From Paraphysomonas bandaiensis (Eukaryota; Protista; Chrysophyceae): a DNA stretch of 64,000 bases. A model generated the notes under the pieces. It had not been told where the DNA came from. It was given only the letters and a program-made list of their open reading frames with translations, and made no database searches. Where the stretch lies: positions 62,001 through 126,000 of the forward strand of contig CBFFRP010000433.1 of the NCBI GenBank assembly GCA_965644295.1. The letters run 5' to 3'. A program made the position numbers and the translations under genes. Shown piece after piece: positions 7,210 through 62,400 of this stretch (positions are counted from its first letter, which is position 1; the number at the start of each line of letters is the position of its first letter).

Positions 7210-8046
7210 ATGGAAAATTTTACACCTCCTTCTTCAAAAGGACCAAGGACGCGTGTGTGTTATGTGTGTGGAAGGTCATATGGTGTAAATAGTTTTGAAA
7301 TTCACTTAAAACAATGCAAGGAATTATGGTTGGCAAGGGAAGCACAAAAACCTTTAAAAGAGCGAAAACCATTACCAAATGATCCATTTGCTTCAAGTGA
7401 CCCTTTACCCACCTCTAATTCATCGTCTCAAAATAGTACACGTCCTCTAGCCTCCACTGGAGGAGGCAAAATACCTTCACAAGCGGAGCTGGATGCTATG
7501 AATGCTGCAGCGACTGCGGCGTACAATACGGAAGCGCTCGATACCTGTGCATTTTGCGGCAGATCATTCTTACCAGAAAAATTGAAAATTCATAACAAAT
7601 CATGCACTGCCGAGAAGCCTGCTCGTCGAGTGGATGAAAAGGTGAAAAGGGGGACCGAGACTCCGAAAGTATCTGCTGTTGATGATGGCCCGAGTGCCTC
7701 CCCAATTCGCCCCAGTCGTCCGAAAACCTCAGGTAGTGGCATTCATCGTCCCAGCCGCGGTTCTGAGGAGCGAAATGGTCCAGTGATTGAGGAGATTGTT
7801 GACGGGGGTCGTAATACTCCTCCCCGCACACTGGCAGGACCCTTTGGTGGATCTTCTGGGAGAGAGATACGGCAACAATCTGCCGGGATAAGACAGGCCA
7901 CATCTGGGACTACAGATTCCCAAAAACTGGAAGCCTTGCTTGCTAAAGTGGATGAGATGGAACGCACTAGTATTTTTCTTTCACAAAGTATATCCGAGGT
8001 GAAGGCGGCCATCGTGGAGCTGCAGCACAACTCCTCGAGCAGATGA
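7210..8046 (+). CDS. C2HC zinc-finger protein (ZNF474/ZC2HC1-like, two fingers)
   Basis: CYVCGRSYGVNSFEIHLKQC and CAFCGRSFLPEKLKIHNKSC both match C-x2-C-x11-H-x3-C; single exon; C-terminal coiled coil. Confidence 0.88.
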   Translation: MENFTPPSSKGPRTRVCYVCGRSYGVNSFEIHLKQCKELWLAREAQKPLKERKPLPNDPFASSDPLPTSNSSSQNSTRPLASTGGGKIPSQAELDAMNAAATAAYNTEALDTCAFCGRSFLPEKLKIHNKSCTAEKPARRVDEKVKRGTETPKVSAVDDGPSASPIRPSRPKTSGSGIHRPSRGSEERNGPVIEEIVDGGRNTPPRTLAGPFGGSSGREIRQQSAGIRQATSGTTDSQKLEALLAKVDEMERTSIFLSQSISEVKAAIVELQHNSSSR

Positions 8047-8700
8047 TTTACTTGTATTAGAAACATAGTGATATGGATTGTACCTAAATAGAAAGCAGTG
8101 TACTGTGCTAGTGATTGGTACTTAAGTGATATATTTATGACCATAGGTATGAGGAAGATACACATCATATAGTAGAGCTAGTGTAGAATACTAGCTAGCC
8201 ATCTCGTGCAATAGAACTATCGTCATTCATATTTATAGTTAATATACTAAAGCAATTATGCTTTCGGTAGCGATATATTATATAGAGAATATGCTTGATG
8301 TTCCTACGTAGAAATCGAGGAGGATACATATCAGAAACTATTTTAACTAATATATGAAATATGGATGGTGTATATTAAATATTAAACAACTGAACTGTAA
8401 ACTTACTTAATAATCATCAATTGTGACCAACATCATTTATCATTCACTACTTACTATCTATGGGCTCAAAATTCATAATTTTCTTACTACTTACTGCATG
8501 GATCAATGAAGTAGCCACAGTACCCTGAAAAGTATGAACTAGAAATACGTAGTTTTGTGTGTTAGCAGAAACTCGTTTTAGTTATTATTTTTATGAAGTG
8601 ACCATCGTAGAAAATATATGACACACAGTATACATACATTGAAGAATTGCTTACACGCCACGAAATTACGTCTAGAATACACAGAGAGCACTCATTTTCA

Positions 8701-9384
8701 TCAGTATACCATTAATGCAAGGGGGTGAGTGACCTGTGGGGCGGGCTTCCTCTTATCATCACTTGAATTATGGGAATACGGTTTCGGATGAACATCCATA
8801 AAGTTAATTCCAGAGTCCACTGAATCAACTGACACTTGACTGTCTGTACTATCTCTGGATGATTGCCTCACATATTCCCGATTATGTGGTTGCTTGTGAA
8901 TAGGTTGTTGTGAGCTGGTACAACACTGCACAGGTTGATAAAGTGCATGAATAGCAGACTTTACTCCGTAATCAGAGAATTCAGACTGCTTCAGCAACTG
9001 CTGTACCTCTTCTTTGGCTGAAGACTTAAACTGTGTGTAGTCGCCAGAGCTCCACCAAAGGTCTTTGTCTAGTCCTCGCGAATAGTAGTCTTTACGTGAG
9101 GGTACTAGCACAACGCGAGAGACTTCACTGAAATGAACATGCGGCTTGCCATTATCTTCTTGGATACTGGCATTGGACAGATCACCTGTCGTACGACGTC
9201 TGGGGCAGCAATTCGGTATCTTTTTACTGCCAATACTTGGTGCTGAGGATCTCCGCAAGAACTTATCGTAGCTCGTAAGTGGATCATTGCGAGACAAGCT
9301 TTCGTGGTATCGTATTTGTGAACATTTCGCTCGTAATGATGTTTTATCACTCGCTCTCCTCCATCGCTGCTTATTAGTGAGCAT
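8701..9384 (-). CDS. Hypothetical protein with V-x-F (RVxF-like) motif followed by the LWWS..DY..FK block
   Basis: ATG-to-stop ORF of 227 aa containing KPHVHFSEVSRVVLVPSRKDY...LWWSSGDYTQFKSSAKEEV. Confidence 0.7.
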   Translation of the reverse strand: MLTNKQRWRRASDKTSLRAKCSQIRYHESLSRNDPLTSYDKFLRRSSAPSIGSKKIPNCCPRRRTTGDLSNASIQEDNGKPHVHFSEVSRVVLVPSRKDYYSRGLDKDLWWSSGDYTQFKSSAKEEVQQLLKQSEFSDYGVKSAIHALYQPVQCCTSSQQPIHKQPHNREYVRQSSRDSTDSQVSVDSVDSGINFMDVHPKPYSHNSSDDKRKPAPQVTHPLALMVY

Positions 9385-9972
9385 ACTGTAGTAAATAATG
9401 ATACAAATATATTATCTTTTGGATTAATTGCTGAATAATTCAGAGTTTTTTTTTCTTTGAATAGAATCCTTTAAATAACTTCTATACAATGAGATGATAT
9501 GATATGATGTATAGTGTATAACTATAGCAGACTGTGTATAATAAACTCAAGACTCAAGATATATTACAGTGCAAGATATATTATTCTCATTCCAATATCA
9601 ATGAAAGAAATCATTCCATCCCCTTGGACATAAGATTTCACAAGAATATAATAATAGTTGATATATTATGAAACAAGTGACAGAGCTCTTGACACCATCG
9701 TATGTATGGATGTATGTATATCATCAGAGCCTATGAGAGAGAGCGTATGATGAGAATGTATGTTCAATTCAACGTTACAGTTGGAGTGCTTCTTATTCCC
9801 TGCACACTGCAACCTTTCACCTATGAACATGTGTTTAGACGGGGTGAAATTTTTGATGGAGTAGCCGTAAACGGATGTTTGACTGGGTAAAGATCTGTAT
9901 CTATACTGTATATCAGGAATACTGGCAGTATACCATGCATCCTATATGTACTGCAGGAGGATATGGGTATGA

Positions 9973-10086
9973 TACGAGTACACTGTAGCAGTACGTCGCG
10001 ATATGGATATGATACTATACGAGTACACTGTAGCAGTACGTCGCGATATGGATATGATAATGTACGAGTACACTGTAGCAGTACGT
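9973..10086. repeat. 45-bp minisatellite, about 2.5 copies
   Basis: TACGAGTACACTGTAGCAGTACGT recurs at 9973, 10018 and 10063. Confidence 0.95.
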
Positions 10087-10289
10087 AGTCCACGTAATAA
10101 GTGTACTGGTCTACCATCGTATATGATAGCTGTGATAGAGGACAAAGTAACAACTGAGAAATATCTGGGAATATGCTCCTATTGATCCAATCCATCTATG
10201 AATATATCCTCCAATCTTATCATAACCATACTACTCCACATCCATTACATCATCCCTCATATCCACATATATCCTCATATATAATCTAA

Positions 10290-12149
10290 ATGGAGAATCA
10301 ATTATCATTTAATAGTGAACATCGTTTACGTTCAGAAAATTTAAGTTGGGATATTGATGTATGGTATCCTCTTGTATCTGAATATACATTTCAAACTATA
10401 TTCATTCCATTAACACGATCAGAAGCATATGCCATTAAAGCTTATCATGATATTTCATGGCGTAAAATACAAAAATCTTTTACAAAAAATGAAATCTTGA
10501 TATTAAAAAATCTTGAAATAAATATAAATAATACAATACAATCATATTTTAAACATGGAGCTTTTGTACGTCTATGTGGAAGGAGTCCTAAAGATGGGGA
10601 GCCACTACACAGGGAACATGTATTACCTGAATATGAATCTCATTTAGAAAGTTTGGTAAAATCAGGTATGGAGTTATCAAGTACTACAAAGATGATGGCT
10701 ATAGCAAGAACATCATGGTTGAAAGTTCATAGTGGTGCTGCGGTTATGTCCTTGTTACTTACATCGGAACGAGTATACGCAGACATTATCGACTGGTTAA
10801 GATTTGGAGAACCTGAGCAAGTGTGTCTCAGAGAGTTTGATAGCGATCTATCACTGGATAACGAATTCAGAGTGTTCATATGTGAGGACCGCATAACTGC
10901 AATATCTCAATATGACCACTATGCTCACTATCCTGGTCTTGAGGACAAAGTCTCCTTCTTGGCAACTGGTATTGAAAAGCTGTGGAAAGAAGTACACAAC
11001 AAAATAGGCGTGTCGAGTTACGTGATGGATGTGGGGTATCTACCTCGATCCGAAAAGTTTGTGGTTATAGAGTTCAGTCCATTTTTCCCGTGCACTGGAG
11101 CTGCGTTATTCAGCTGGAGCAAAGATGAAGATACTCTGTTGGGTCGCAAGCCTTTTGAATTTCGTATTAAAACCTCGACGTAAGTATAGCTACAAGTGAT
11201 ATATCACATTTTATGACACTTCACACATCTGCCAATGCAGTACTAAATACTTACCTGTTTATTTTATGGGTGCAGGGAAGTTCATCCTCAGTTAGACGAA
11301 TTAATTCAATGCAACTGGGAAGATAGATGGCGGACTCCGATTCCACGATATGATTCGCTATTCCTTCCAGGCTCTTCTATTTCCACTGAGTGGAGTGGTA
11401 CTATACGCAGACTATTGGCCCAAGTGCCAGCTTACGTGGGCCACTTTGTTCCACTTTCTTTCTCATTTGAAAATATATTCCAAAAAAATGCATCTGTGGT
11501 AAATAGTATTTCTTCTATATCTACTTTCGTGGCATCAATCGGCACCTGGGCATTTCACTACACATCATTGATCGGGCTTCGTGGTAAACTATACAACGAT
11601 CAGGGACATTTGCTATTCGTGTATGGCACACTAAAGAGAGGATTTCACTGGTCTGATAAGTATCTTCATCGAAGAGGAGAGGGCAGGGTAAACAATTTTA
11701 TTTCTCGAGCTGTCACCAGAGATATGCATCGACTGGTTGTAGGTAAATGTGGTGTGCCATATCTTTCTTTGGGCGTTGCCCAAGATGGAGTTTTTGGTTC
11801 TAGTGGAAATAGAGTTCGAGGCGAGCTGTGGTGTGTTTCATCTGAATGCTTACAAAATTTGGATGACTATGAAGGCATATCGAAGGACTACTACAGCAGG
11901 AAATCTATTTTCGTTTGTACTGAAGGGAAAGAAGAACCTGTAGAAGCGCAAGTTTACTGTATCAACTTTATTCCCTCTGAACTGTCATCAGAGCCATTTA
12001 TTGAAGAGTACACACTGGATATGCACAAAGAATTGTACAACCCCATTCAACATATTCAGGTAAAGCAATTAAGTTACATTCAAGCTCCATCTAGTTGGGG
12101 AAAGGTAAGATTCCCATCTGTTGTGGGAATGAATAACTCTATGACCTAG
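10290..12149 (+). CDS. Cdc123/R2K-type ATP-grasp domain fused to a gamma-glutamylcyclotransferase (GGACT/AIG2-like) domain; 2 exons (10290-11179, 11276-12149), about 587 aa
   Basis: Exon 1 has WYPL, FVRLCGRSPKD, LLLTSERV, EFRVFI, AISQY, VMDV and VIEFSPF..TGAALFSW (Cdc123/D123-like). Intron GTAAGT(11180)..TGCAG(11275) keeps the frame open into LFVYGTLKRG, GELW, LDDYEG and YSRK (GGCT fold). Confidence 0.88.
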
Positions 12150-12959
12150 ATTAGTGTGGGACTTTTTTGTTTAAGCTAATCCAATAAAAATGTTTACCAG
12201 TAGTTGCACTCATTTTTCATTCTGTACCCGAAATGAAATGCCTGATAGGCTGGAAGACGCCAACATATCACACTACTAATTGACGCACAAGCAAGCCTAC
12301 GGAATAACTCCTGAATACATGTATGTCGCATGTGGTAGTAAACTCACTAGAAGTATTATCTCAGGATTTCTGGTACATAACATAGGTACATGTGGCACCA
12401 TTGGCTTTGTGTTGATAGGTAACATGTTGTCCTTTTACACTTCTACTTTCAACTACCACTAGTTGTTTCAAATTTCAACATATTGGAGTCCTGAGGATCA
12501 AAGTAAATATTGTAGTTCATGGCGTTAAAACCAAACTATCAATTTTAAATAGAACCTGATATACATAGTATCTTACACTTGGAGAATAATGAGCATGGCA
12601 GTCGTGCGTTAGAGGAGATCATATCCTAGTGATATCAGACCTTTCAGATTTATGTTTAGTTAACCATCTGCTCGTTTCCTTGACAGTCATTTGCAGTACG
12701 CTTGAACGGGAATGATTTTAAGTAGATAATCCTTACTGAATAAAAATATTGCATAATATTATTAGATTATTCGTTGTTACTTGAAAGAAAGGTACTTCAA
12801 TGTGTGAAAAATACTGTATATGATAGAATATTCGATGCGCTATCTCTAAAACACTGTAATGATGTGATGAACTAACAAACGTGATTTTCAACACAATACG
12901 ATGCGTATGGCAGATGATTTATCACCAGCGACAGTTGTCTACTGGACTAAGATGATCTG

Positions 12960-13724
12960 TTACTTGTCATTTGACTGCTCCGTGTCGGATGACTTGTTTG
13001 CCATGTACGAAACAAATACATTCCAGAACAAAGCGGCCACATTAACCCATAGCACTTGGTACTGCACTGGAACATAAGCAAAGTTAACCATTTGGACAGG
13101 AGGCCAGAACATACAGTCCACCATAAAAGTGGGAAGAAAAATCTTGGATGTGTGCTCGCATGCCTCTTTCATGATGTGAGTCATGTTCTTTGAATTCTGC
13201 CCAGTCTCCATAGGAATCACTGTAGAACAAGTATGTCCAACATCACAAAGAGCTGATCTCCTGGAATTAAAAATTCGATACATATAGTGTTCAACATTAT
13301 CAGCCATGCCATATAGAAACCCATACGACACGAAGAAGGTTCCAAGATAAGCAGATCCGAACACAAACTGATCGAAAAATATCTTGGTGGCCAATACTTT
13401 CCCCTTACCGAATTTGGCCGTGTATTTGAATGAAGCTAATATCTTAGGAATTTTATCAACGGCATTATACCAACAATGAAATACCGGTCCACATAAAAAT
13501 GTCCCTAAGAGGAACATTACACCTGCCCTTTTAATATTAAATGGTGGGATAACATTCTTTTCAATCTTTGATACATATCTTTCAACTGATTGTGCAACAA
13601 TATCACCACATACAGCTAATGTTCCAGCTGTTAAACTTTTTGTTTTAATTGGATGAAGGCTTAAATATTTTGAATATGTATTACCAAAATGTGTAGCACC
13701 TTTTATAACTAATCTTAAAGGCAT
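12960..13724 (-). CDS. Mpv17/PMP22 family membrane protein
   Basis: HPIKTKSLTAG..GDIVAQ, GPVFHCWY, KIFFDQFVF, FWPPVQMVNFAYVP..YQVLWVN...FWN. First ATG at 13724; an upstream exon is possible. Confidence 0.93.
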   Translation of the reverse strand: MPLRLVIKGATHFGNTYSKYLSLHPIKTKSLTAGTLAVCGDIVAQSVERYVSKIEKNVIPPFNIKRAGVMFLLGTFLCGPVFHCWYNAVDKIPKILASFKYTAKFGKGKVLATKIFFDQFVFGSAYLGTFFVSYGFLYGMADNVEHYMYRIFNSRRSALCDVGHTCSTVIPMETGQNSKNMTHIMKEACEHTSKIFLPTFMVDCMFWPPVQMVNFAYVPVQYQVLWVNVAALFWNVFVSYMANKSSDTEQSNDK

Positions 13725-14602
13725 ACCTTTGGTGTCTATATGAATAAATAATATCACCTGATACAAATACAGGGAATATAGAGATTAGTAGTAGTTTCTT
13801 CTTCTTTTAATACTTAGTTTGATGTATAGATCTATATGGAAATAGAATATTGGCGAGTAGATGTATATATAGACTATAGAAATATCTGTATGTATATATA
13901 CATATAAAAACATCTGTTTTGTCCATTGGATGTGGACACTAAAAACATATGTATGTATATTCCAGATACGCTAAATGAATGGCAGATGTGACATAAAAGA
14001 TTCTGTTATAGAATATAGAAACTGAAAATTGATGGTAACCTCAACATTCATACGTACGATAATTCTGTCTGCGATCCAGCAGAATATGTCGATCCAGTAA
14101 AAAAATCCAGGCTTTTTTGATACATGTTGTTTTTTGACGAATATATTTCAGAGAAATAACGAAAAAAGGTCGATTTTTTTACTACGGAATTTTGATATCT
14201 ACCGTATGTAGTGTAGTTTCTAGAAATTGTCGTACGTATTGTATGACTAGAAAATTTGAATGGTGGTATGAAAACTCATGATTTTAATAAATAAAACTGT
14301 AGTTTTGTATTAATAAAACTATAAATCATGATTTTCATTCTTACAGACAGGTTCGCACTATGTACTGCTGTACACTAAGTGTCCATGAAGCGGTTGGATT
14401 TGCTTTGCAACATAATGGTGCAGTGTATTATCCATCTCATCCACCAGCAGTGCAATGCAATGCAGTGCAGTCGAGTGGGATCCTGTAGATATGACACATG
14501 AGAGATCTGACAGTATCTATAGAAAGACTATGATCTAACAATAATCTACTTACAATATAGGAAAAGATACTTTGCAGAAAAAATAGGGATAAGCATGCAC
14601 GT

Positions 14603-53491: not shown

Positions 53492-56400
53492 TCACTTAGT
53501 CTTTCCGTGTCTTCCCTTCGCCTTCCCTGTCTTTTTAGAAGACACGGAAGATTTACGTGTCTTCGTCAACCCCTTCCTGCTGCCTTTCTTTTTGTATGTC
53601 TTCGTCTTTTTCGAAGAAGAACGGGTTGAAATTTTTTTAGATTGTGAGTCCGATTTCTTATTATTTAAGGAAGGGTTAGAAAGTTTGGATTGTCGATGTT
53701 TTTTCTTCCTTTTATCAGACATTGAGGCCTTTGATGCTGTTGGATACAGCGTGGGCAGAGAACCAGGCAACGGTGATGTCGGAAAAACAGTGGGGGAGTA
53801 CGAAGGAACAGAAGAAAAAACAGTCGAGGGGGCTGTGCTCGGCAAATTTAGAGCGGGAATCGTCGGCCGTAAACTTGGAGAAACATTCGGCTGGAGAATT
53901 GGCCCAGGGCGATGTGATCTTTTCTTTCTAAAATCTTTTCTACGTTTCCAAGCCTTTCCTTTCTTCTTTCGAGGTCTTGAAGTTCGATAACGTTTCTTTC
54001 TTGTTGACGCCAAAGTAGGTTGTGATACAGCAGCACTTGGGTTCAAACTTGGAAATTGACTCGGAATATCTAAAAACGGAAGTGTAGGGCGAAATGTAGA
54101 AGGTACCAATGACGACGGTGAAAGTGTCGGAACTGTTGAGGGTATTGAAGTGGGTAGCGATGTCGGGATTGAGGTTGGAAGAGATGTCGGGATTACAGTG
54201 GGTAGAGATGTGGGTAGAGATGTCGGGAATGACGTTGGTACGGACGTAGGATTCGATGTTGGAATGGAAGTAGGATTCGATGTCGGAGGGCTAGTAGGTA
54301 TCGAAGTGGGTAGCGATGTGGGGATTACGGTGGGAAGAGATGTGGGTAGAGAAGTTGGTATCGATGTGGGTAGCGATGTTGGAATTGATGTCGGTACGGT
54401 GGTAGGATTCGATGTCGGGAATGAGGTGGGAAGAGATGTGGGTAGAGAAGTTGGTATCGATGTGGGTACAGATGTCGGAAATGAAGTAGGAAAAGATGTC
54501 GGTAAGCTGGTTGGCACCGATGTAGGTAGAGATGTCGGGATAGAGGTGGGAGGAGACGTAGGGAGACTGGTAGGTATTGAAGTGGGTAGCGATGTCGGAA
54601 TTGAGGTTGGAAGAGATGTCGGGATTACAGTGGGAAGAGTTGTGGGTAGAGATGTCGGGATTGACGTTGGTACGGACGAAGGATTCGATGTTGGAATGGA
54701 AGTAGGATTCGATGTCGGAGTGCTAGTAGGTATTGAGGTGGGTATCGTTGTCGAAATTGATGTGGGAAGAGATGTCGGGAATGAGGTAGGCAGAGATGTG
54801 GGTAGAGATGTCGGGATTGACGTTGGTACGGACGTAGGATTCGATGTCGGAGGGCTAGTAGGTATCGAAGTGGGTAGCGATGTGGGCATTACGGTGGGAA
54901 GAGATGTGGGTAGAGAAGTTGGTATCGATGTGGGTACAGATGTCGGAAATGAAGTGGGAAGAGATGTCGGTAAGCTGGTTGGCACCGATGTAGGTAGAGA
55001 TGTCGGGATAGAGGTGGGAGGAGATGTAGGGAGACTGGTAGGTATTGAAGTGGGTAGCGATGTCGGAATTGAGGTTGGAAGAGATGTCGGGATTACAGTG
55101 GGTAGAGATGTGGGAAAAGATGTCGGGATTACAGTGGGTAGAGACGTGGGAAGAGATGTGGGAAGCGATATCGGGATTACAGTGGGTAGAGATGTGGGTA
55201 GAGATGTCGGAAATGACGTTGGTACGGACGTAGGATTCGATGTTGGAATGGAAGTAGGATTCGATGTCGGAGGGCTAGTAGGTATCGAAGTGGGTAGAGG
55301 TGTGGGGATTACGGTGGGAAGAGATGTGGGTAGAGAAGTTGGTATCGATGTGGGAAGCGATGTTGGAAATGAAGTGGGTAGAGATGTCGGTAAGCTGGTT
55401 GGTACCGATGTAGGTAGAGATTTCGGGATAGAGGTGGGAGGAGACGTAGGAAGACTGGTAGGTATTGAAGTGGGTAGCGATGTCGGAATTGAGGTTGGAA
55501 GAGATGTCGGGATTACAGTAGGTAGAGATGTGGGTAGAGATGTCGGGAATGACGTTGGTACGGACGTAGGATTCGATGTCGGAGGGCTAGTAGGTATCGA
55601 AGTGGGTAGCGATGTGGGGATTACGGTGGGAAGAGATGTGGGTAGAGAAGTTGGTATCGATGTTGGAATTGATGTCGGTACGGTGGTAGGATTCAATGTC
55701 GGGAATGAGGTGGGAAGAGATGTGGGTAGAGAAGTTGGTATCGATGTGGGTACAGATGTCGGAAATGAAGTGGGAAGAGATGTCGGTAAGCTGGTTGGTA
55801 CCGATGTAGGTAGAGATGTCGGGATAGAGGTGGGAGGAGATGTAGGGAGACTGGTAGGTATTGAAGTGGGTAGCGATGTCGGGATTGATGTGGGAAGAGA
55901 TGTCGGGATTACAGTGGGTAGAGATGTGGGTAGAGATGTCGGGATTGACGTTGGTACGGACGTAGGATTCGATGTTGGAATGGAAGTAGGATTCGATGTC
56001 GGAGGGCTAGTAGGTATCGAAGTGGGTAGCGATGTGGGGATTACGGTGGGAAGAGATGTGGGTAGAGAAGTTGGTATCAATGTGGGAAGCGATGTTGGAA
56101 TTGATGTCGGTACGGTGGTAGGATTCGATGTCGGGAATGAGGTGGGAAGAGATGTGGGTAGAGAAGTTGGTATCGATGTGGGTACAGATGTCGGAAATGA
56201 AGTGGGAAGAGATATCGGTAAGCTGGTTGGTACCGATGTAGGTAGAGATGTCGGGATAGAGGTGGGAGGAGATGTAGGGAGACTGGTAGGTATTGAAGTG
56301 GGTAGCGATGTCGGAATTGAGGTTGGAAGAGATGTCGGGATTACAGTGGGTAGAGATGTGGGTAGAGATGTCGGGATTGACGTTGGTACGGACGTAGGAT

Positions 56401-59400
56401 TCGATGTTGGAATGGAAGTAGGATTCGATGTCGGAGAGCTAGTAGGTATCGAAGTGGGTAGCGATGTGGGGATTACGGTGGGAAGAGATGTGGGTAGAGA
56501 AGTTGGTATCGATGTGGGAAGCGATGTTGGAATTGATGTCGGTACGGTGGTAGGGTTCGATGTCGGGAATGAGGTGGGAAGAGATGTGGGTAGAGAAGTT
56601 GGTATCGATGAGGGTACAGATGTCGGAAATGAAGTGGGAAGAGATGTCGGTAAGCTGGTTGGTACCGATGTAGGTAGAGATGTCGGGATAGAGGTGGGAG
56701 GAGACGTAGGGAGACTGGTAGGTCTTGAAGTGGGTAGCGATGTCGGAATTGAGGTTGGAAGAGATGTCGGGATTACAGTAGGTAGAGATGTGGGAAGAGA
56801 TGACGGGATTACAGTGGGTAGAGATGTCGGGATTGACGTCAGTACGGACGTAGGATTCGATGTCGGGAATGAGGTGGGAAGAGATGTGGGTAGAGAAGTT
56901 GGTATCGATGTGGGTACAGATGTCGGAAATGAAGTGGGAAGAGATGTCGGTAAGCTGGTTGGTACCGATGTAGGTAGAGATGTCGGGATAGAGGTGGGAG
57001 GAGATGTAGGGAGACTGGTAGGTATTGAAGTGGGTAGCGATGTCGGAATTGAGGTTGGAAGAGATGTCGGGATTACAGTGGGTAGAGATGTCGGGATTGA
57101 CGTCGGTACGGACGTAGGATTCGATGTTGGAATGGAAGTAGGATTCGATGTCGGAGGGCTAGTAGGTATCGAAGTGGGTAGCGATGTGGGGATTACGGTG
57201 GGAAGAGATGTGGGTAGAGAAGTTGGTATCGATGTGGGAAGCGATGTTGGAATTGATGTCGGTACGGTGGTAGGATTCGATGTCGGGAATGAGGTGGGAA
57301 GAGATGTGGGTAGAGAAGTTGGTATCGATGTGGGTACAGATGTCGGAAATGAAGTGGGAAGAGATGTCGGTAAGCTGGTTGGCACCGATGTAGGTAGAGA
57401 TGTCGGGATAGAGGTGGGAGGAGACGTAGGGAGACTGGTAGGTCTTGAAGTGGGTAGCGATGTCGGAATTGAGGTTGGAAGAGATGTCGGGATTACAGTG
57501 GGTAGAGATGTCGGGATTGACGTCGGTACGGACGTAGGATTCGATGTCGGGAATGAGGTGGGAAGAGATGTGGGTAGAGAAGTTGGTATCGATGTGGGTA
57601 CAGATGTCGGAAATGAAGTGGGAAGAGATGTCGGTAAGCTGGTTGGTACCGATGTAGGTAGAGATGTCGGGATAGAGGTGGGAGGAGATGTAGGGAGACT
57701 GGTAGGTATTGAAGTGGGTAGCGATGTCGGGATTGATGTGGGAAGAGATGTCGGGATTACAGTGGGTAGAGATGTGGGTAGAGATGTCGGGATTGACGTT
57801 GGTACGGACGTAGGATTCGATGTTGGAATGGAAGTAGGATTCGATGTCGGAGGGCTAGTAGGTATCGAAGTGGGTAGCGATGTGGGGATTACGGTGGGAA
57901 GAGATGTGGGTAGAGAAGTTGGTATCGATGTGGGAAGCGATGTTGGAATTGATGTCGGTACGGTGGTAGGATTCGATGTCGGGAATGAGGTGGGAAGAGA
58001 TGTGGGTAGAGAAGTTGGTATCGATGTGGGTACAGATGTCGGAAATGAAGTGGGAAGAGATGTCGGTAAGCTGGTTGGTACCGATGTAGGTAGAGATGTC
58101 GGGATAGAGGTGGGAGGAGATGTAGGGAGACTGGTAGGTATTGAAGTGGGTAGCGATGTCGGGATTGATGTGGGAAGAGATGTCGGGATTACAGTGGGTA
58201 GAGATGTGGGTAGAGATGTCGGGATTGACGTTGGTACGGACGTAGGATTCGATGTTGGAATGGAAGTAGGATTCGATGTCGGAGGGCTAGTAGGTATCGA
58301 AGTGGGTAGCGATGTGGGGATTACGGTGGGAAGAGATGTGGGTAGAGAAGTTGGTATCGATGTGGGAAGCGATGTTGGAATTGATGTCGGTACGGTGGTA
58401 GGATTCGATGTCGGGAATGAGGTGGGAAGAGATGTGGGTAGAGAAGTTGGTATCGATGTGGGTACAGATGTCGGAAATGAAGTGGGAAGAGATGTCGGTA
58501 AGCTGGTTGGCACCGATGTAGGTAGAGATGTCGGGATAGAGGTGGGAGGAGACGTAGGGAGACTGGTAGGTCTTGAAGTGGGTAGCGATGTCGGAATTGA
58601 GGTTGGAAGAGATGTCGGGATTACAGTGGGTAGAGATGTCGGGATTGACGTCGGTACGGACGTAGGATTCGATGTCGGGAATGAGGTGGGAAGAGATGTG
58701 GGTAGAGAAGTTGGTATCGATGTGGGTACAGATGTCGGAAATGAAGTGGGAAGAGATGTCGGTAAGCTGGTTGGTACCGATGTAGGTAGAGATGTCGGGA
58801 TAGAGGTTGGAGGAGACGTAGGGAGACTGGTAGGTATTGAAGTGGGTAGCGATGTCGGGATTACAGTAGGTAGAGATGTGGGAAGAGATGTCGGGATTGA
58901 CGTCGGTACAGACGTAGGATTCGATGTCGGGAATGAGGTGGGAAGAGATGTGGGTAGAGAAGTAGGTATCGATGTGGGAAGCGATGTTGGAATTAATGTC
59001 GGTACAGACGTAGGATTCGATGTCGGGAATGAGGTGGGAAGAGATGTGGGTAGAGAAGTTGGTATCGATGTGGGTACAGATGTCGGAAATGAAGTGGGAA
59101 GAGATGTCGGTAAGCTGGTTGGTACCGATGTAGGTAGAGATGTCGGGATAGAGGTTGGAGGAGATGTAGGGAGACTGGTAGGTATTGAAGTGGGTAGCGA
59201 TGTCGGAATTGAGGTTGGAAGAGATGTCGGGATTACAGTAGGTAGAGATGTGGGAAGAGATGTCGGGATTGACGTCGGTACAGACGTAGGATTCGATGTC
59301 GGGAATGAGGTGGGAAGAGATGTGGGTAGAGAAGTTGGTATCGATGTGGGTACAGATGTCGGAAATGAAGTGGGAAGAGATGTCGGTAAGCTGGTTGGTA

Positions 59401-62400
59401 CCGATGTAGGTAGAGATGTCGGGATAGAGGTGGGAGGAGATGTAGGGAGACTGGTAGGTATTGAAGTGGGTAGCGATGTCGGGATTGATGTGGGAAGAGA
59501 TGTCGGGATTACGGTGGGTAGAGATGTGGGTAGAGATGTCGGGATTGACGTCGGTACAGACGTAGGATTCGATGTCGGGAATGAGGTGGGAAGAGATGTG
59601 GGTAGAGAAGTTGGTATCGATGTGGGTACAGATGTCGGAAATGAAGTGGGAAGAGATGTCGGTAAACTGGTTGGTACCGATGTAGGTAGAGATGTCGGGA
59701 TAGAGGTGGGAGGAGATGTAGGGAGACTGGTAGGTATTGAAGTGGGTAGCGATGTCGGAATTGAGGTTGGAAGAGATGTCGGGATTACAGTAGGTAGAGA
59801 TGTGGGAAGAGATGTCGGGATTGACGTCGGTAAATATGTCGGGATTGACGTCGGTACAGACGTAGGATTCGATGTCGGGAATGAGGTGGGAAGAGATGTG
59901 GGTAGAGAAGTTGGTATCGATGTGGGTACAGATGTCGGAAATGAAGTGGGAAGAGATGTCGGTAAACTGGTTGGTACCGATGTAGGTAGAGATGTCGGGA
60001 TAGAGGTTGGAGGAGATGTAGGGAGACTGGTAGGTATTGAAGTGGGTAGCGATGTCGGAATTGAGGTTGGAAGAGATGTCGGGATTACAGTAGGTAGAGA
60101 TGTGGGAAGAGATGTCGGGATTGACGTCGGTAAAGATGTCGGGATTGACGTCGGTACAGACGTAGGATTCGATGTCGGGAATGAGGTGGGAAGAGATGTG
60201 GGTAGAGAAGTTGGTATCGATGTGGGTACAGATGTCGGAAATGAAGTGGGAAGAGATGTCGGTAAGCTGGTTGGTACCGATGTAGGTAGAGATGTCGGGA
60301 TAGAGGTTGGAGGAGATGTAGGGAGACTGGTAGGTATTGAAGTGGGTAGCGATGTCGGGATTGATGTGGGAAGAGATGTCGGGATTACAGTGGGTAGAGA
60401 TGTGGGTAGAGATGTCGGGATTGACGTTGGTACGGACGTAGGATTCGATGTTGGAATGGAAGTAGGATTCGATGTCGGAGGGCTAGTAGGTATCAAAGTG
60501 GGTAGCGATGTGGGGATTACGGTGGGAAGAGATGTGGGTAGAGAAGTTGGTATCGATGTGGGAAGCGATGTTGGAATTGATGTCGGTACGGTGGTAGGAT
60601 TCGATGTCGGGAATGAGGTGGGAAGAGATGTGGGTAGAGAAGTTGGTATCGATGTGGGTACAGATGTCGGAAATGAAGTGGGAAGAGATGTCGGTAAGCT
60701 GGTTGGCACCGATGTAGGTAGAGATGTCGGGATAGAGGTTGGAGGAGATGTAGGGAGACTGGTAGGTATTGAAGTAGGTAGCGATGTCGGAATTGAGGTT
60801 GGAAAAGAAGTCGGGATTACAGTAGGTAGAGACGTGGGAAGAGATGTGGGAAGAGATGTCGGGATTACAGTGGGTAGAGATGTGGGTAGAGATGTCGGGA
60901 TTGACGTTGGTACGGACGTAGGATTCGATGTTGGAATGGAAGTAGGATTCGATGTCGGAGGGCTAGTAGGTATCGAAGTGGGTAGCGATGTCGGGATTAC
61001 GGTGGGAAGAGATGTGGGTAGAGAAGTTGGTATCGATGTTGGAATTGATGTCGGTACGGTGGTAGGATTCAATGTCGGGAATGAGGTGGGAAGAGATGTG
61101 GGTAGAGATGTCGGGATTGACGTTGGTACGGACGTTGGATTCGATGTTGGAATGGAAGTAGGATTCGATGTCGGAGGGCTAGTAGGTATCGAAGTGGGTA
61201 GCGATGTGGGGATTACGGTGGGAAGAGATGTGGGTAGAGAAGTTGGTATCGATGTTGGAATAGATGTCGGTACGGTGGTAGGATTCAATGTCGGGAATGA
61301 GGTGGGTAGAGAAGTTGGTATCGATGTGGGAAGCGATGTCGGTACGGTGGTAGGATTCGATGTCGGGAATGAGGTGGGAAGAGATGTGGGTACAGATGTC
61401 GGAAATGAAGTGGGAAGAGATGTCGGTAAGCTGGTTGGCACCGATGTAGGTAGGGATGTCGGGATAGAGGTGGGAGGAGATGTAGGGAGACTGGTAGGTA
61501 TTGAAGTGGGTAGCGATGTCGGAATTGAGGTTGGAAGAGATGTCGGGATTACAGTGGGTAGAGATGTCGGGATTGACGTCGGTACGGACGTAGGATTCGA
61601 TGTCGGAGGGCTAGTAGGTATCGAAGTGGGTAGCGATGTGGGGATTACGGTGGAATGAGATGTGGGTAGATATGTTGGAAATGAAGTGGAAAGAGATGTC
61701 GGGAATGAGGTGGGAGGCGATGCAGGGAGACTGGTAGGTATCGATGAGGGTTGTAATGTTTTGATTGACGTTGGTGCGGAGGTAGGATTTGATGTTGGAA
61801 TGGAGGATGGTGAGGATGTAGGAGTGTATGTTGGGAGTAAAGTTGGCACCCTTGTTGGAACTTCAAGTAATGGCACTGGTGGTCTCGAGGTAGGAAGGAG
61901 AGTACTCTCAGGTCTAGATGGCTTCGGAGTTCGTTGTTTTTTCTTCTTAGTTGGACTTGGCGTATTTACATTGCTTGGTGTTAGAGTTGGAGTTGAAATA
62001 GGTAGAAGGGTCGGAACTTCAAGGGCAGGTACAGAAGGGCAAGGAGTTGAAGTTGGTTTGTATGTGCGATGCTGCATTGGTGGTTGCTTTTTCCGAGGGG
62101 GTAGCCTCTTCTTCCTTGGCGGAGATCTCCTCTTCCTTGGTGGAGATCTCTTCTTTCTTGGTGGAAACCTCTTCTTCCTTGGTGGAAGCCTCTTCTTCCT
62201 ATGAGCCGGTAAACGTTTCTTTTTTCGTTCCAGCACATGCAAAGTTCTGAGATCCCCACTGTCAGTATCATCCCTCCCCAAAGTGACAATTCGACTAGGA
62301 TGTTTGGTATAATCTGAAGACAATATCAGATCTGGATTGTCATTATGAATGGAGTGCATGAGATGATGTGACTTGGTTTTTCTTACTGCGAGATCGGCTC

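Follow-up and report, generated by a model that had tools for sequence, protein, structure and literature searches.

We describe here a gene in which an ATP-grasp domain of the Cdc123-like R2K.1 type is joined, within one polypeptide, to a gamma-glutamyl(amine) cyclotransferase domain of the GGACT type. The gene occupies nucleotide positions 10290-12149 on the + strand of a 64,000-nucleotide (nt) stretch of Paraphysomonas bandaiensis DNA (assembly GCA_965644295.1, contig CBFFRP010000433.1, positions 62,001 to 126,000), which is referred to below as the window. RNA-derived contigs demonstrated that this is a single gene with one 96-nt intron, and that its mRNA specifies one protein of 587 amino acids. 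Comparisons with public sequences, described below, fit a conserved, single-origin family of such fused proteins in several protist lineages. With regard to function, we give a probability of roughly 0.4 to the reading that both halves handle the same gamma-glutamyl-amine linkage, one half making it with ATP and the other removing it.

The raw track of open reading frames (ORFs) displays the region as 2 + strand ORFs in different frames, 10290-11183 (297 amino acids) and 11415-12149 (244 amino acids, with a TTG start). A preliminary description of this DNA had proposed that an intron joins the 2 ORFs in frame, and the splice signals are evident: GTAAGT begins at 11180 and a CAG ends at 11275. 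Joining 11179 to 11276 keeps the frame and yields 1764 nt of coding sequence for 587 amino acids, with 0 internal stops. Exon 1 (10290..11179, +) encodes amino acids 1-296 plus 2 bases of codon 297 and contains the Cdc123-like R2K.1 ATP-grasp domain, and exon 2 (11276..12149, +) contributes the last base of codon 297, amino acids 298-587, and a TAG stop at 12147-12149. The 96-nt intron (11180..11275, +; GTAAGT...CAG) is of phase 2, such that codon 297 is split AC/G to give ACG, Thr297. It is located at the domain boundary, its splicing removes an in-frame TAA at 11181-11183, and a genomic contig from a relative has GT at the same codon place and phase.

Among 23 public sequencing runs listed, 20 contain the stretch wholly or partly, 10 of which are recorded as RNA, and the runs that contain the fused gene are marine plankton samples. 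We aligned RNA contigs from 4 runs, each from a separate study, to positions 9400-13000; the runs comprised a poly(A)-selected marine metatranscriptome, a random-primed metatranscriptome and 2 organism-labelled assemblies. In all 4 the sole joint was 11179>11276, with 96 nt skipped between GT and AG, and the intron of the preliminary description, together with the RNA evidence across 11179/11276 that it had named as the check, is thereby confirmed. The contigs span both halves unbroken, from 10251 or 10274 to 12199, and define a transcribed span (10251..12199, +; aligned segments 10251/10274-11179 and 11276-12199) that includes a 5' untranslated region of at least 39 nt and a 3' untranslated region of about 50 nt. 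The likely polyadenylation signal, AATAAA at 12183..12188 (+), is 11 nt short of the contig ends. Transcripts of the neighbouring genes are distinct from that of the fused gene, one ending at about 9655 and the other beginning at about 12745.

That the ORFs 10290-11183 and 11415-12149 might be separate genes for separate proteins, mis-joined here across an in-frame intron that is coincidental, is suggested by the raw ORF track and is accommodated to the extent that the RNA evidence consists of assembled contigs rather than reads, in which depth is uninformative and a minor intron-retaining isoform, with a 297-amino-acid ATP-grasp-only product, is possible; but this reading, which we hold to be exceedingly improbable, is already contradicted by the spliced form assembled in 4 runs from 4 studies with no alternative joint, by the recurrence of this fused order in over 100 clusters of homologues, complete transcripts from other species among them, and by exon 2 itself, where the first in-frame ATG is M447, downstream of the catalytic N-terminal YGTLKRG motif, so that an intact cyclotransferase domain could not be started from its own ATG.

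The N-terminal half was identified both by profile and by fold. Exon 1 matched the Pfam D123 profile with 66.1 bits (cut-off 24; E 3.8e-18), although over profile positions 109-254 of 300 only, and it matched Pfam R2K_2 and R2K_3 less strongly. Structure models were made for each half separately, and that of the N-terminal half, from an alignment of 90 relatives, had a predicted local distance difference test score (pLDDT) of 95.4 and a predicted template modelling score (pTM) of 0.90. In Foldseek comparisons each of its ten best matches in the Protein Data Bank was a Cdc123 entry, with E values of about 1e-15 to 1e-13 and template modelling (TM) scores of 0.6-0.7 (for 4ZGP and 8PHD, E 2e-15 and TM 0.62-0.72); D-Ala-D-Ala ligases and RimK came next. 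These observations agree with the Cdc123/R2K-type assignment of the preliminary description. Unlike the solved Cdc123 proteins, to which it is 17-20% identical, the protein described here carries a C-terminal GGACT domain.

The resemblance to CDC123 extends in part into the active site, as judged from alignments. The loop R94-L-C96-G-R98-S-P-K101-D102 (10569..10595, +) probably corresponds to human CDC123 K104...R111, and its basic pair has the same spacing of 7, but the residues are swapped, R94/K101 versus K104/R111; the equivalence was read from the motif F-x-[KR]-L-x3-[SA]-P-[KR]-D rather than from superposed structures. Human K104 is the conserved Lys of RAGNYA strand 2 in the ATP-grasp template (PMC4431377), and human A109 and R111 sit in the ATP pocket (PMC12860950). 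All but one of 39 fused proteins (38) have Arg94, as do most of the stand-alone relatives. The segment E192-F-R194 (10863..10871, +) is the ExR motif of peptide-type ATP-grasp ligases; it is invariant, aligns with human EFR, and puts the domain among the amide-forming ATP-grasp ligases that use an acyl-phosphate route (PMC4431377, section 6). Two acidic positions are also invariant: D247, which corresponds to the strand-4 acidic residue D233 of human CDC123, and E261, which corresponds to D246 of human D246xN248.

A departure from the family pattern occurs at E261-F-S263 (11070..11078, +), a variant of the ATP-grasp ExN metal motif in which Asn is changed to Ser. Of the D/ExN signature of the family, the fused protein keeps the acidic residue and has Ser263 in place of the Asn. 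At position 263, 47 of the 49 rows in the fused clade have S, whereas N is present in all 42 stand-alone relatives, and on these alignments S263 would be a derived trait that unites the fused clade. Altogether 4 clean differences separate the fused clade from the stand-alone relatives, namely C96 versus S, W169 versus A, D209 versus N, and S263 versus N. In contrast, R94, R98, K101, D102, E192xR194, D247 and E261 show little or no variation across the fused clade. The comparisons indicate an ATP-grasp domain that is strongly constrained, yet whose active site is altered in step with fusion. We note also that C96, W169, D209 and S263, which are in or near the active site, changed jointly with the fusion, and that a conserved Cys in a phosphate-binding loop, as at C96, is unusual.

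In the C-terminal half, amino acids 406-565 (11601..12080, +) form a domain of the GGACT type, the C-terminal helix of which is conserved. Exon 2 matched Pfam GGACT (PF06094) with 54.4 bits (cut-off 22.8; E 2.3e-14), and its best solved sequence relatives are human and mouse GGACT. The model of this half, with pLDDT above 90 across most of the GGACT domain, matched the fold of mouse and human GGACT (1VKB/3JUB) with a TM of 0.81 and 28-30% identity. Both features on which the preliminary description had based its assignment are in place: the N-terminal substrate-binding motif of the GGCT fold, Y413-G-T-L-K-R-G419 (11622..11642, +), which it quoted within VYGTLKRG, and the catalytic Glu, E496 (11871..11873, +) in LDDYEG, which aligns with Glu82 of human GGACT, a position occupied by Q in the E82Q mutant 3JUD. 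Conservation of these residues was high among 39 fused proteins (Y 35, G 35, T 35, L 39 and K 34; E496 in 35 of 39); together with the ATP-grasp positions given above, active-site-type residues are constrained in both halves. The animal enzyme (A2LD1; 3JUB, 3JUC, 1VKB) differs in being a stand-alone protein of about 150 amino acids, whereas the domain described here is the C-terminal part of a 587-amino-acid protein; the fused clade also has its own GFHW motif after YGTLKRG, as well as the conserved C-terminal helix (..Y.PI.HIQVKQ..Y). In GGACT-fold enzymes generally, the alpha-amine of the glutamyl group attacks the gamma-glutamyl amide to yield 5-oxoproline and a free amine.

The fused architecture is not peculiar to P. 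bandaiensis. The halves of the window protein were searched apart, and HMMER searches with exon 1 returned 1951 representatives at E<=1e-3, of which 117 were at E<=1e-30; the close full-length matches were nearly all 500-790 amino acids long with the ATP-grasp domain N-terminal. Sixty-one homologues that we fetched and re-scored with 3 parts of the window protein have both domains in the same order, and Pfam scans of a homologue sample agree with the two-domain architecture. For a full-length search we used the homologue P0044 (586 amino acids, 55% identical), and among the best 120 of its 182 clusters (E<=1e-10), 110 had PF07065 and PF06094 together. Fused members were found in the diatom Seminavis robusta, the raphidophyte Heterosigma akashiwo, the amoebozoans Planoprotostelium fungivorum and Balamuthia mandrillaris, the heterolobosean Acrasis kona, and several MMETSP and EukProt transcriptomes, complete transcripts among them; one fused member is flanked by ordinary eukaryotic genes. 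A protein atlas returned a single eukaryotic cluster (216 members, labelled 'hypothetical protein') with D123 in 99% and GGACT in 13% of members, which contributes little. An NCBIfam scan gave nothing useful.

In a maximum-likelihood tree of 91 ATP-grasp domains, all 40 fused rows were located in one 49-row clade (Shimodaira-Hasegawa-like approximate likelihood ratio test, SH-aLRT, 99), and the 42 remaining stand-alone relatives, including a paralogue from the same genome (see below), were outside it. Of the 9 further rows in the clade, the 2 longest carry a weak GGACT domain, and the 7 shorter ones (300-370 amino acids) look like truncated calls, for example exon-1-only ORFs, as was confirmed for P0043 alone. 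Placement of all fused rows in one clade fits a single origin of the fusion, in a tree that is unrooted as to direction of change. One family member, P0026, is located at 8001-9419 of a 423-kb ENA metagenome contig that is packed with short ORFs, hardly any of which matched Pfam; this contig could be viral, from a giant virus, or could come from a protist of an unusual kind. When viral contigs were scanned with P0026 and with P0058, no relatives were recovered, by a method that detects close relatives only and so does not provide evidence of absence.

A search of the P. bandaiensis genome (62.6 Mb, 669 contigs) revealed 3 D123-type loci: the fused gene, a canonical Cdc123 on contig C234, and a stand-alone copy on contig C280. 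The canonical gene (C234:41544-42539) has several exons that together cover D123 profile positions 1-298, the best piece scoring 100 bits over positions 1-128. This separate gene covers the D123 profile along its whole length; the fused gene is not the canonical Cdc123 and is, on the present comparisons, a divergent paralogue rather than an orthologue of that eIF2 assembly factor. The C280 copy (1336-2460 of the extracted stretch, - strand) encodes 375 amino acids with 29% identity over the whole domain, retains the canonical K and ExN, and ends at the end point of exon 1. The intron of the fused gene is therefore at the domain boundary, and the ATP-grasp unit occurs also in an unfused form in this genome. 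Burroughs, Zhang and Aravind (2015, PMC4431377) described a 'second set' of fast-evolving R2K.1 proteins in amoeboid eukaryotes, Legionella and giant viruses. These are likewise non-canonical Cdc123-like paralogues, often multicopy, in Amoebozoa and Heterolobosea, groups in which the fused family is represented by Balamuthia, Planoprotostelium and Acrasis, and the stand-alone paralogue of the present genome is a further point of resemblance. The fused family differs in that it is found also in non-amoeboid algae (diatoms and a raphidophyte), in a comparison based on description.

On the side of the second domain, the genome has 4 GGACT-type loci, and the 3 other than the fused gene are unfused. 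An ORF on contig C360 (1084-1902, - strand) encodes a 272-amino-acid GGCT-like protein (YGSN..., LDRFEG) with a C-terminal extension and is unrelated to the fusion. Matches of Hydantoinase_B/5-oxoprolinase type were observed along contig C129. We had considered the fusion as a substitute for a missing 5-oxoprolinase, and rejected this idea in view of the canonical oxoprolinase-type gene on C129.

Between the 2 domains is a conserved segment (amino acids 298-325; 11277..11360, +) with the pattern ..P..L...NW..RW.....PY, which is predicted to be helical and can be aligned in most fused homologues, followed by a variable linker (amino acids 326-405; 11361..11600, +) that is unconserved and of low model confidence. 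Linker length across homologues ranges from 58 to 211 residues. The preliminary description had suggested that a hydrophobic linker anchors the protein to a membrane. We observed that amino acids 343-361 and 369-397 are moderately hydrophobic, with a peak Kyte-Doolittle 19-residue mean of 1.2, but the threshold for a transmembrane segment is 1.6 and no segment anywhere in the 587-amino-acid protein reaches it. A membrane anchor for the window protein was ruled unsupported, and the fused protein is apparently cytosolic. The homologues differ in this respect: 15 of 44 have linker stretches at 1.6-3.1 in the same place, often 2 that are adjacent, whereas those with short linkers (58-70 amino acids) have 0 hydrophobic stretches of that strength. 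Examples of hydrophobic linkers are P0046 (amino acids 400-463), P0048 (345-398), P0063 (381-434) and P0089 (273-319), and the window protein retains only weak remnants where such homologues have their hydrophobic stretches. The paired stretches would possibly fit a helical hairpin, with both domains on one side of the membrane, and by these profiles membrane attachment appears to be a property of some family members only.

The preliminary description had not known this fusion as a characterised architecture, and in one sense that holds: we found no publication that describes or tests a fusion of a Cdc123/ATP-grasp domain with a cyclotransferase, in a search whose coverage left out most subscription journals, and the paper that defines the R2K clade (PMC4431377) contains 0 mentions of a GGACT, AIG2 or cyclotransferase fusion. 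It is not, however, novel in the databases. Public sequences form more than 100 clusters, from several eukaryotic supergroups, for which both Pfam domains have been precomputed, and since the fused sequences are public and machine-annotated, the architecture is not a discovery of this window. The database names ('gamma-glutamylcyclotransferase', 'AIG2-like family', 'GGCT/AIG2-like') refer mostly to the cyclotransferase half only. The fusion is real, conserved and unstudied, and its chief value is as a handle on Cdc123-like ATP-grasp chemistry.

How the 2 halves could act on the same linkage may be outlined as follows. At the expense of ATP, the ATP-grasp half would activate a carboxylate, in the simplest case the gamma-carboxyl of glutamate, which would then be joined to an amine, for example that of a small molecule or of a lysine in a protein. 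The gamma-glutamyl group would be removed again by the GGACT half through intramolecular cyclisation, with release of 5-oxoproline and the free amine. The outcome would be either a gamma-glutamyl mark whose reversal is controlled by the same polypeptide, or temporary protection of the amine, as with BtrJ and BtrG. We favor this same-linkage reading because the 2 domains are specified by one mRNA and one ORF, the fusion is conserved, both active sites seem to be constrained, and the ATP-grasp half has the ExR of amide ligases. A domain-docking prediction for the 2 halves gave a median score of 0.57 versus 0.00 for the best control, with one of 3 runs at 0.00; agreement between runs was at least 0% of contacts, and pLDDT of the partners was at least 65. 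Of 78 solved complexes, 51 attained this mark, as did 2 of 108 mismatched pairs; scores of 0.60 or less, however, included only 5 of the 78 solved complexes and all 4 of the mismatches that passed. The modelling gives weak support to docking of the 2 halves and returned no interface, so that no geometry is derived from it.

Several considerations weigh against this reading. To our knowledge, no member of the R2K/Cdc123 family has a demonstrated ligase product. Canonical CDC123 is an ATP-binding ATPase and an eIF2 assembly chaperone for which no ligase product has been reported (PMC12860950, PMC8844851). The presence of Ser for the ExN Asn, and of Arg for the strand-2 Lys, means that ordinary ATP-grasp catalysis is not assured. 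Further, making and breaking the same bond within one chain amounts to futile cycling in the absence of regulation or of some intervening step elsewhere, and the gene context points to no partner or substrate, as the neighbours are separately transcribed and 80 bacterial GGACT loci are without R2K. A writer-eraser or protect/deprotect cycle, such as the preliminary description had put forward, is thus weakened by the lack of a reported ligase product for CDC123 and by the Asn to Ser change in ExN.

Precedents exist for such pairings of activities. In PFK-2/FBPase-2, the RelA/SpoT-type synthetase-hydrolases and GlnE, the making and removing activities for the same bond are on one polypeptide, an arrangement that permits switch-like control; these are analogies, their folds and chemistry being unrelated to those of the fused protein, for which an opposing activity is only proposed. 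In butirosin biosynthesis, the ATP-grasp enzyme BtrJ adds a gamma-glutamyl protecting group that the GGCT-like BtrG removes as 5-oxoproline; BtrJ is not known to belong to the R2K clade. The pairing of enzyme classes, ATP-grasp and cyclotransferase fold, is the same as in the fused protein. The butirosin enzymes differ, however, in being 2 separate bacterial proteins from a biosynthetic cluster with a carrier protein, whereas the present gene encodes one eukaryotic polypeptide and has no biosynthetic neighbours. For BtrJ and BtrG, PMC13707489 confirms the gene names alone.

A different reading, which we consider possible though on the unlikely side, is that the ATP-grasp half serves as a Cdc123-style adaptor or chaperone that binds and hydrolyses ATP, recognises a client or senses ATP, and steers the cyclotransferase. 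The latter would then be the sole bond-changing activity and might remove gamma-glutamyl groups, for example from epsilon-(gamma-glutamyl)lysine, on a client or from small amines, a part of the proposal to which we attach the same tentative standing. Canonical CDC123 hydrolyses ATP and assembles eIF2 through domain 3 of eIF2-gamma, with no ligation reported (PMC12860950, PMC8844851), and CDC123 entries 8PHD and 4ZGN are top fold matches of the N-terminal half. Loss of the ExN Asn from the fused clade, along with the full catalytic set of the cyclotransferase half, also suits an adaptor. Yet nearly all other ATP-grasp catalytic positions, ExR included, are invariant, which exceeds what nucleotide binding usually needs; no client is indicated; and since a separate canonical Cdc123 is kept in the genome, this paralogue need not work alike.

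We regard as improbable a third arrangement, a composite ATP-driven site in which 5-oxoproline bound by the GGACT half is activated by the ATP-grasp half to give glutamate or a gamma-glutamyl-amine, that is, the reverse reaction or lactam opening. GGACT does bind 5-oxoproline, and 3JUC is among the best fold matches; the coordinated changes at C96, W169, D209 and S263 suggest a chemistry unlike that of the stand-alone relatives, and the weak predicted docking described above is in the same direction. A linker that is long and variable, and that in some homologues contains hydrophobic hairpins, nevertheless does not point to a rigid composite site. Such a site is also not required in a genome that has its normal 5-oxoprolinase-type gene on C129, and no precedent for it is known to us.

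The genes adjacent to the fused gene were considered for clues to its role. Downstream, at 12963-13766 (- strand), is a gene of the Mpv17/PMP22 family, and upstream, at 8704-9384 (- strand), is a 227-amino-acid ORF with no Pfam match. Each has its own RNA contigs, and both are on the strand opposite to the fused gene and are separately transcribed. We found no biosynthetic context, in the form of a carrier protein or tailoring enzymes, among the neighbours. A hidden Markov model built from the ATP-grasp alignment detected 0 R2K-like ORFs within 6 kb of the best 80 bacterial and archaeal GGACT loci; these prokaryotic relatives are 30-41% identical and are from Opitutaceae, Planctomycetota and others. 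Two other features of the window were recorded. A 45-nt tandem repeat at 9972-10086 (2.6 copies, 97% match) is located about 170-280 nt upstream of the start of the fused gene's transcript, in the untranscribed spacer between divergent transcripts. Positions 54001-62000 exhibit an extreme GC skew (about 0.69-0.71) over 8 kb, within a long repetitive ORF.

The Cdc123/R2K clade was predicted in 2015 to consist of amide-bond ligases (PMC4431377). An R2K domain that is fused to a well-defined chemistry offers a concrete and testable guess at R2K chemistry, on a soluble eukaryotic protein. One could go further and take the fusion as a Rosetta-stone clue that the Cdc123/R2K.1 clade acts on gamma-glutamyl amide bonds, with the present protein both writing and erasing a gamma-glutamyl mark on a cellular target, at lysine or some other amine. 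We hold this extended proposal to be doubtful; if true, the R2K.1 clade would for the first time have a demonstrated ligase chemistry, and the finding would hint at what to seek for Cdc123 and for the amoebal, Legionella and giant-virus paralogues. If the halves are not opposed to each other, the work still supplies a correctly joined gene model where ORF-based callers report two pieces. If they do oppose each other, diatoms, raphidophytes, amoebae and heteroloboseans would possess, in the fused family, a new system of reversible modification or a device for gamma-glutamyl protection.

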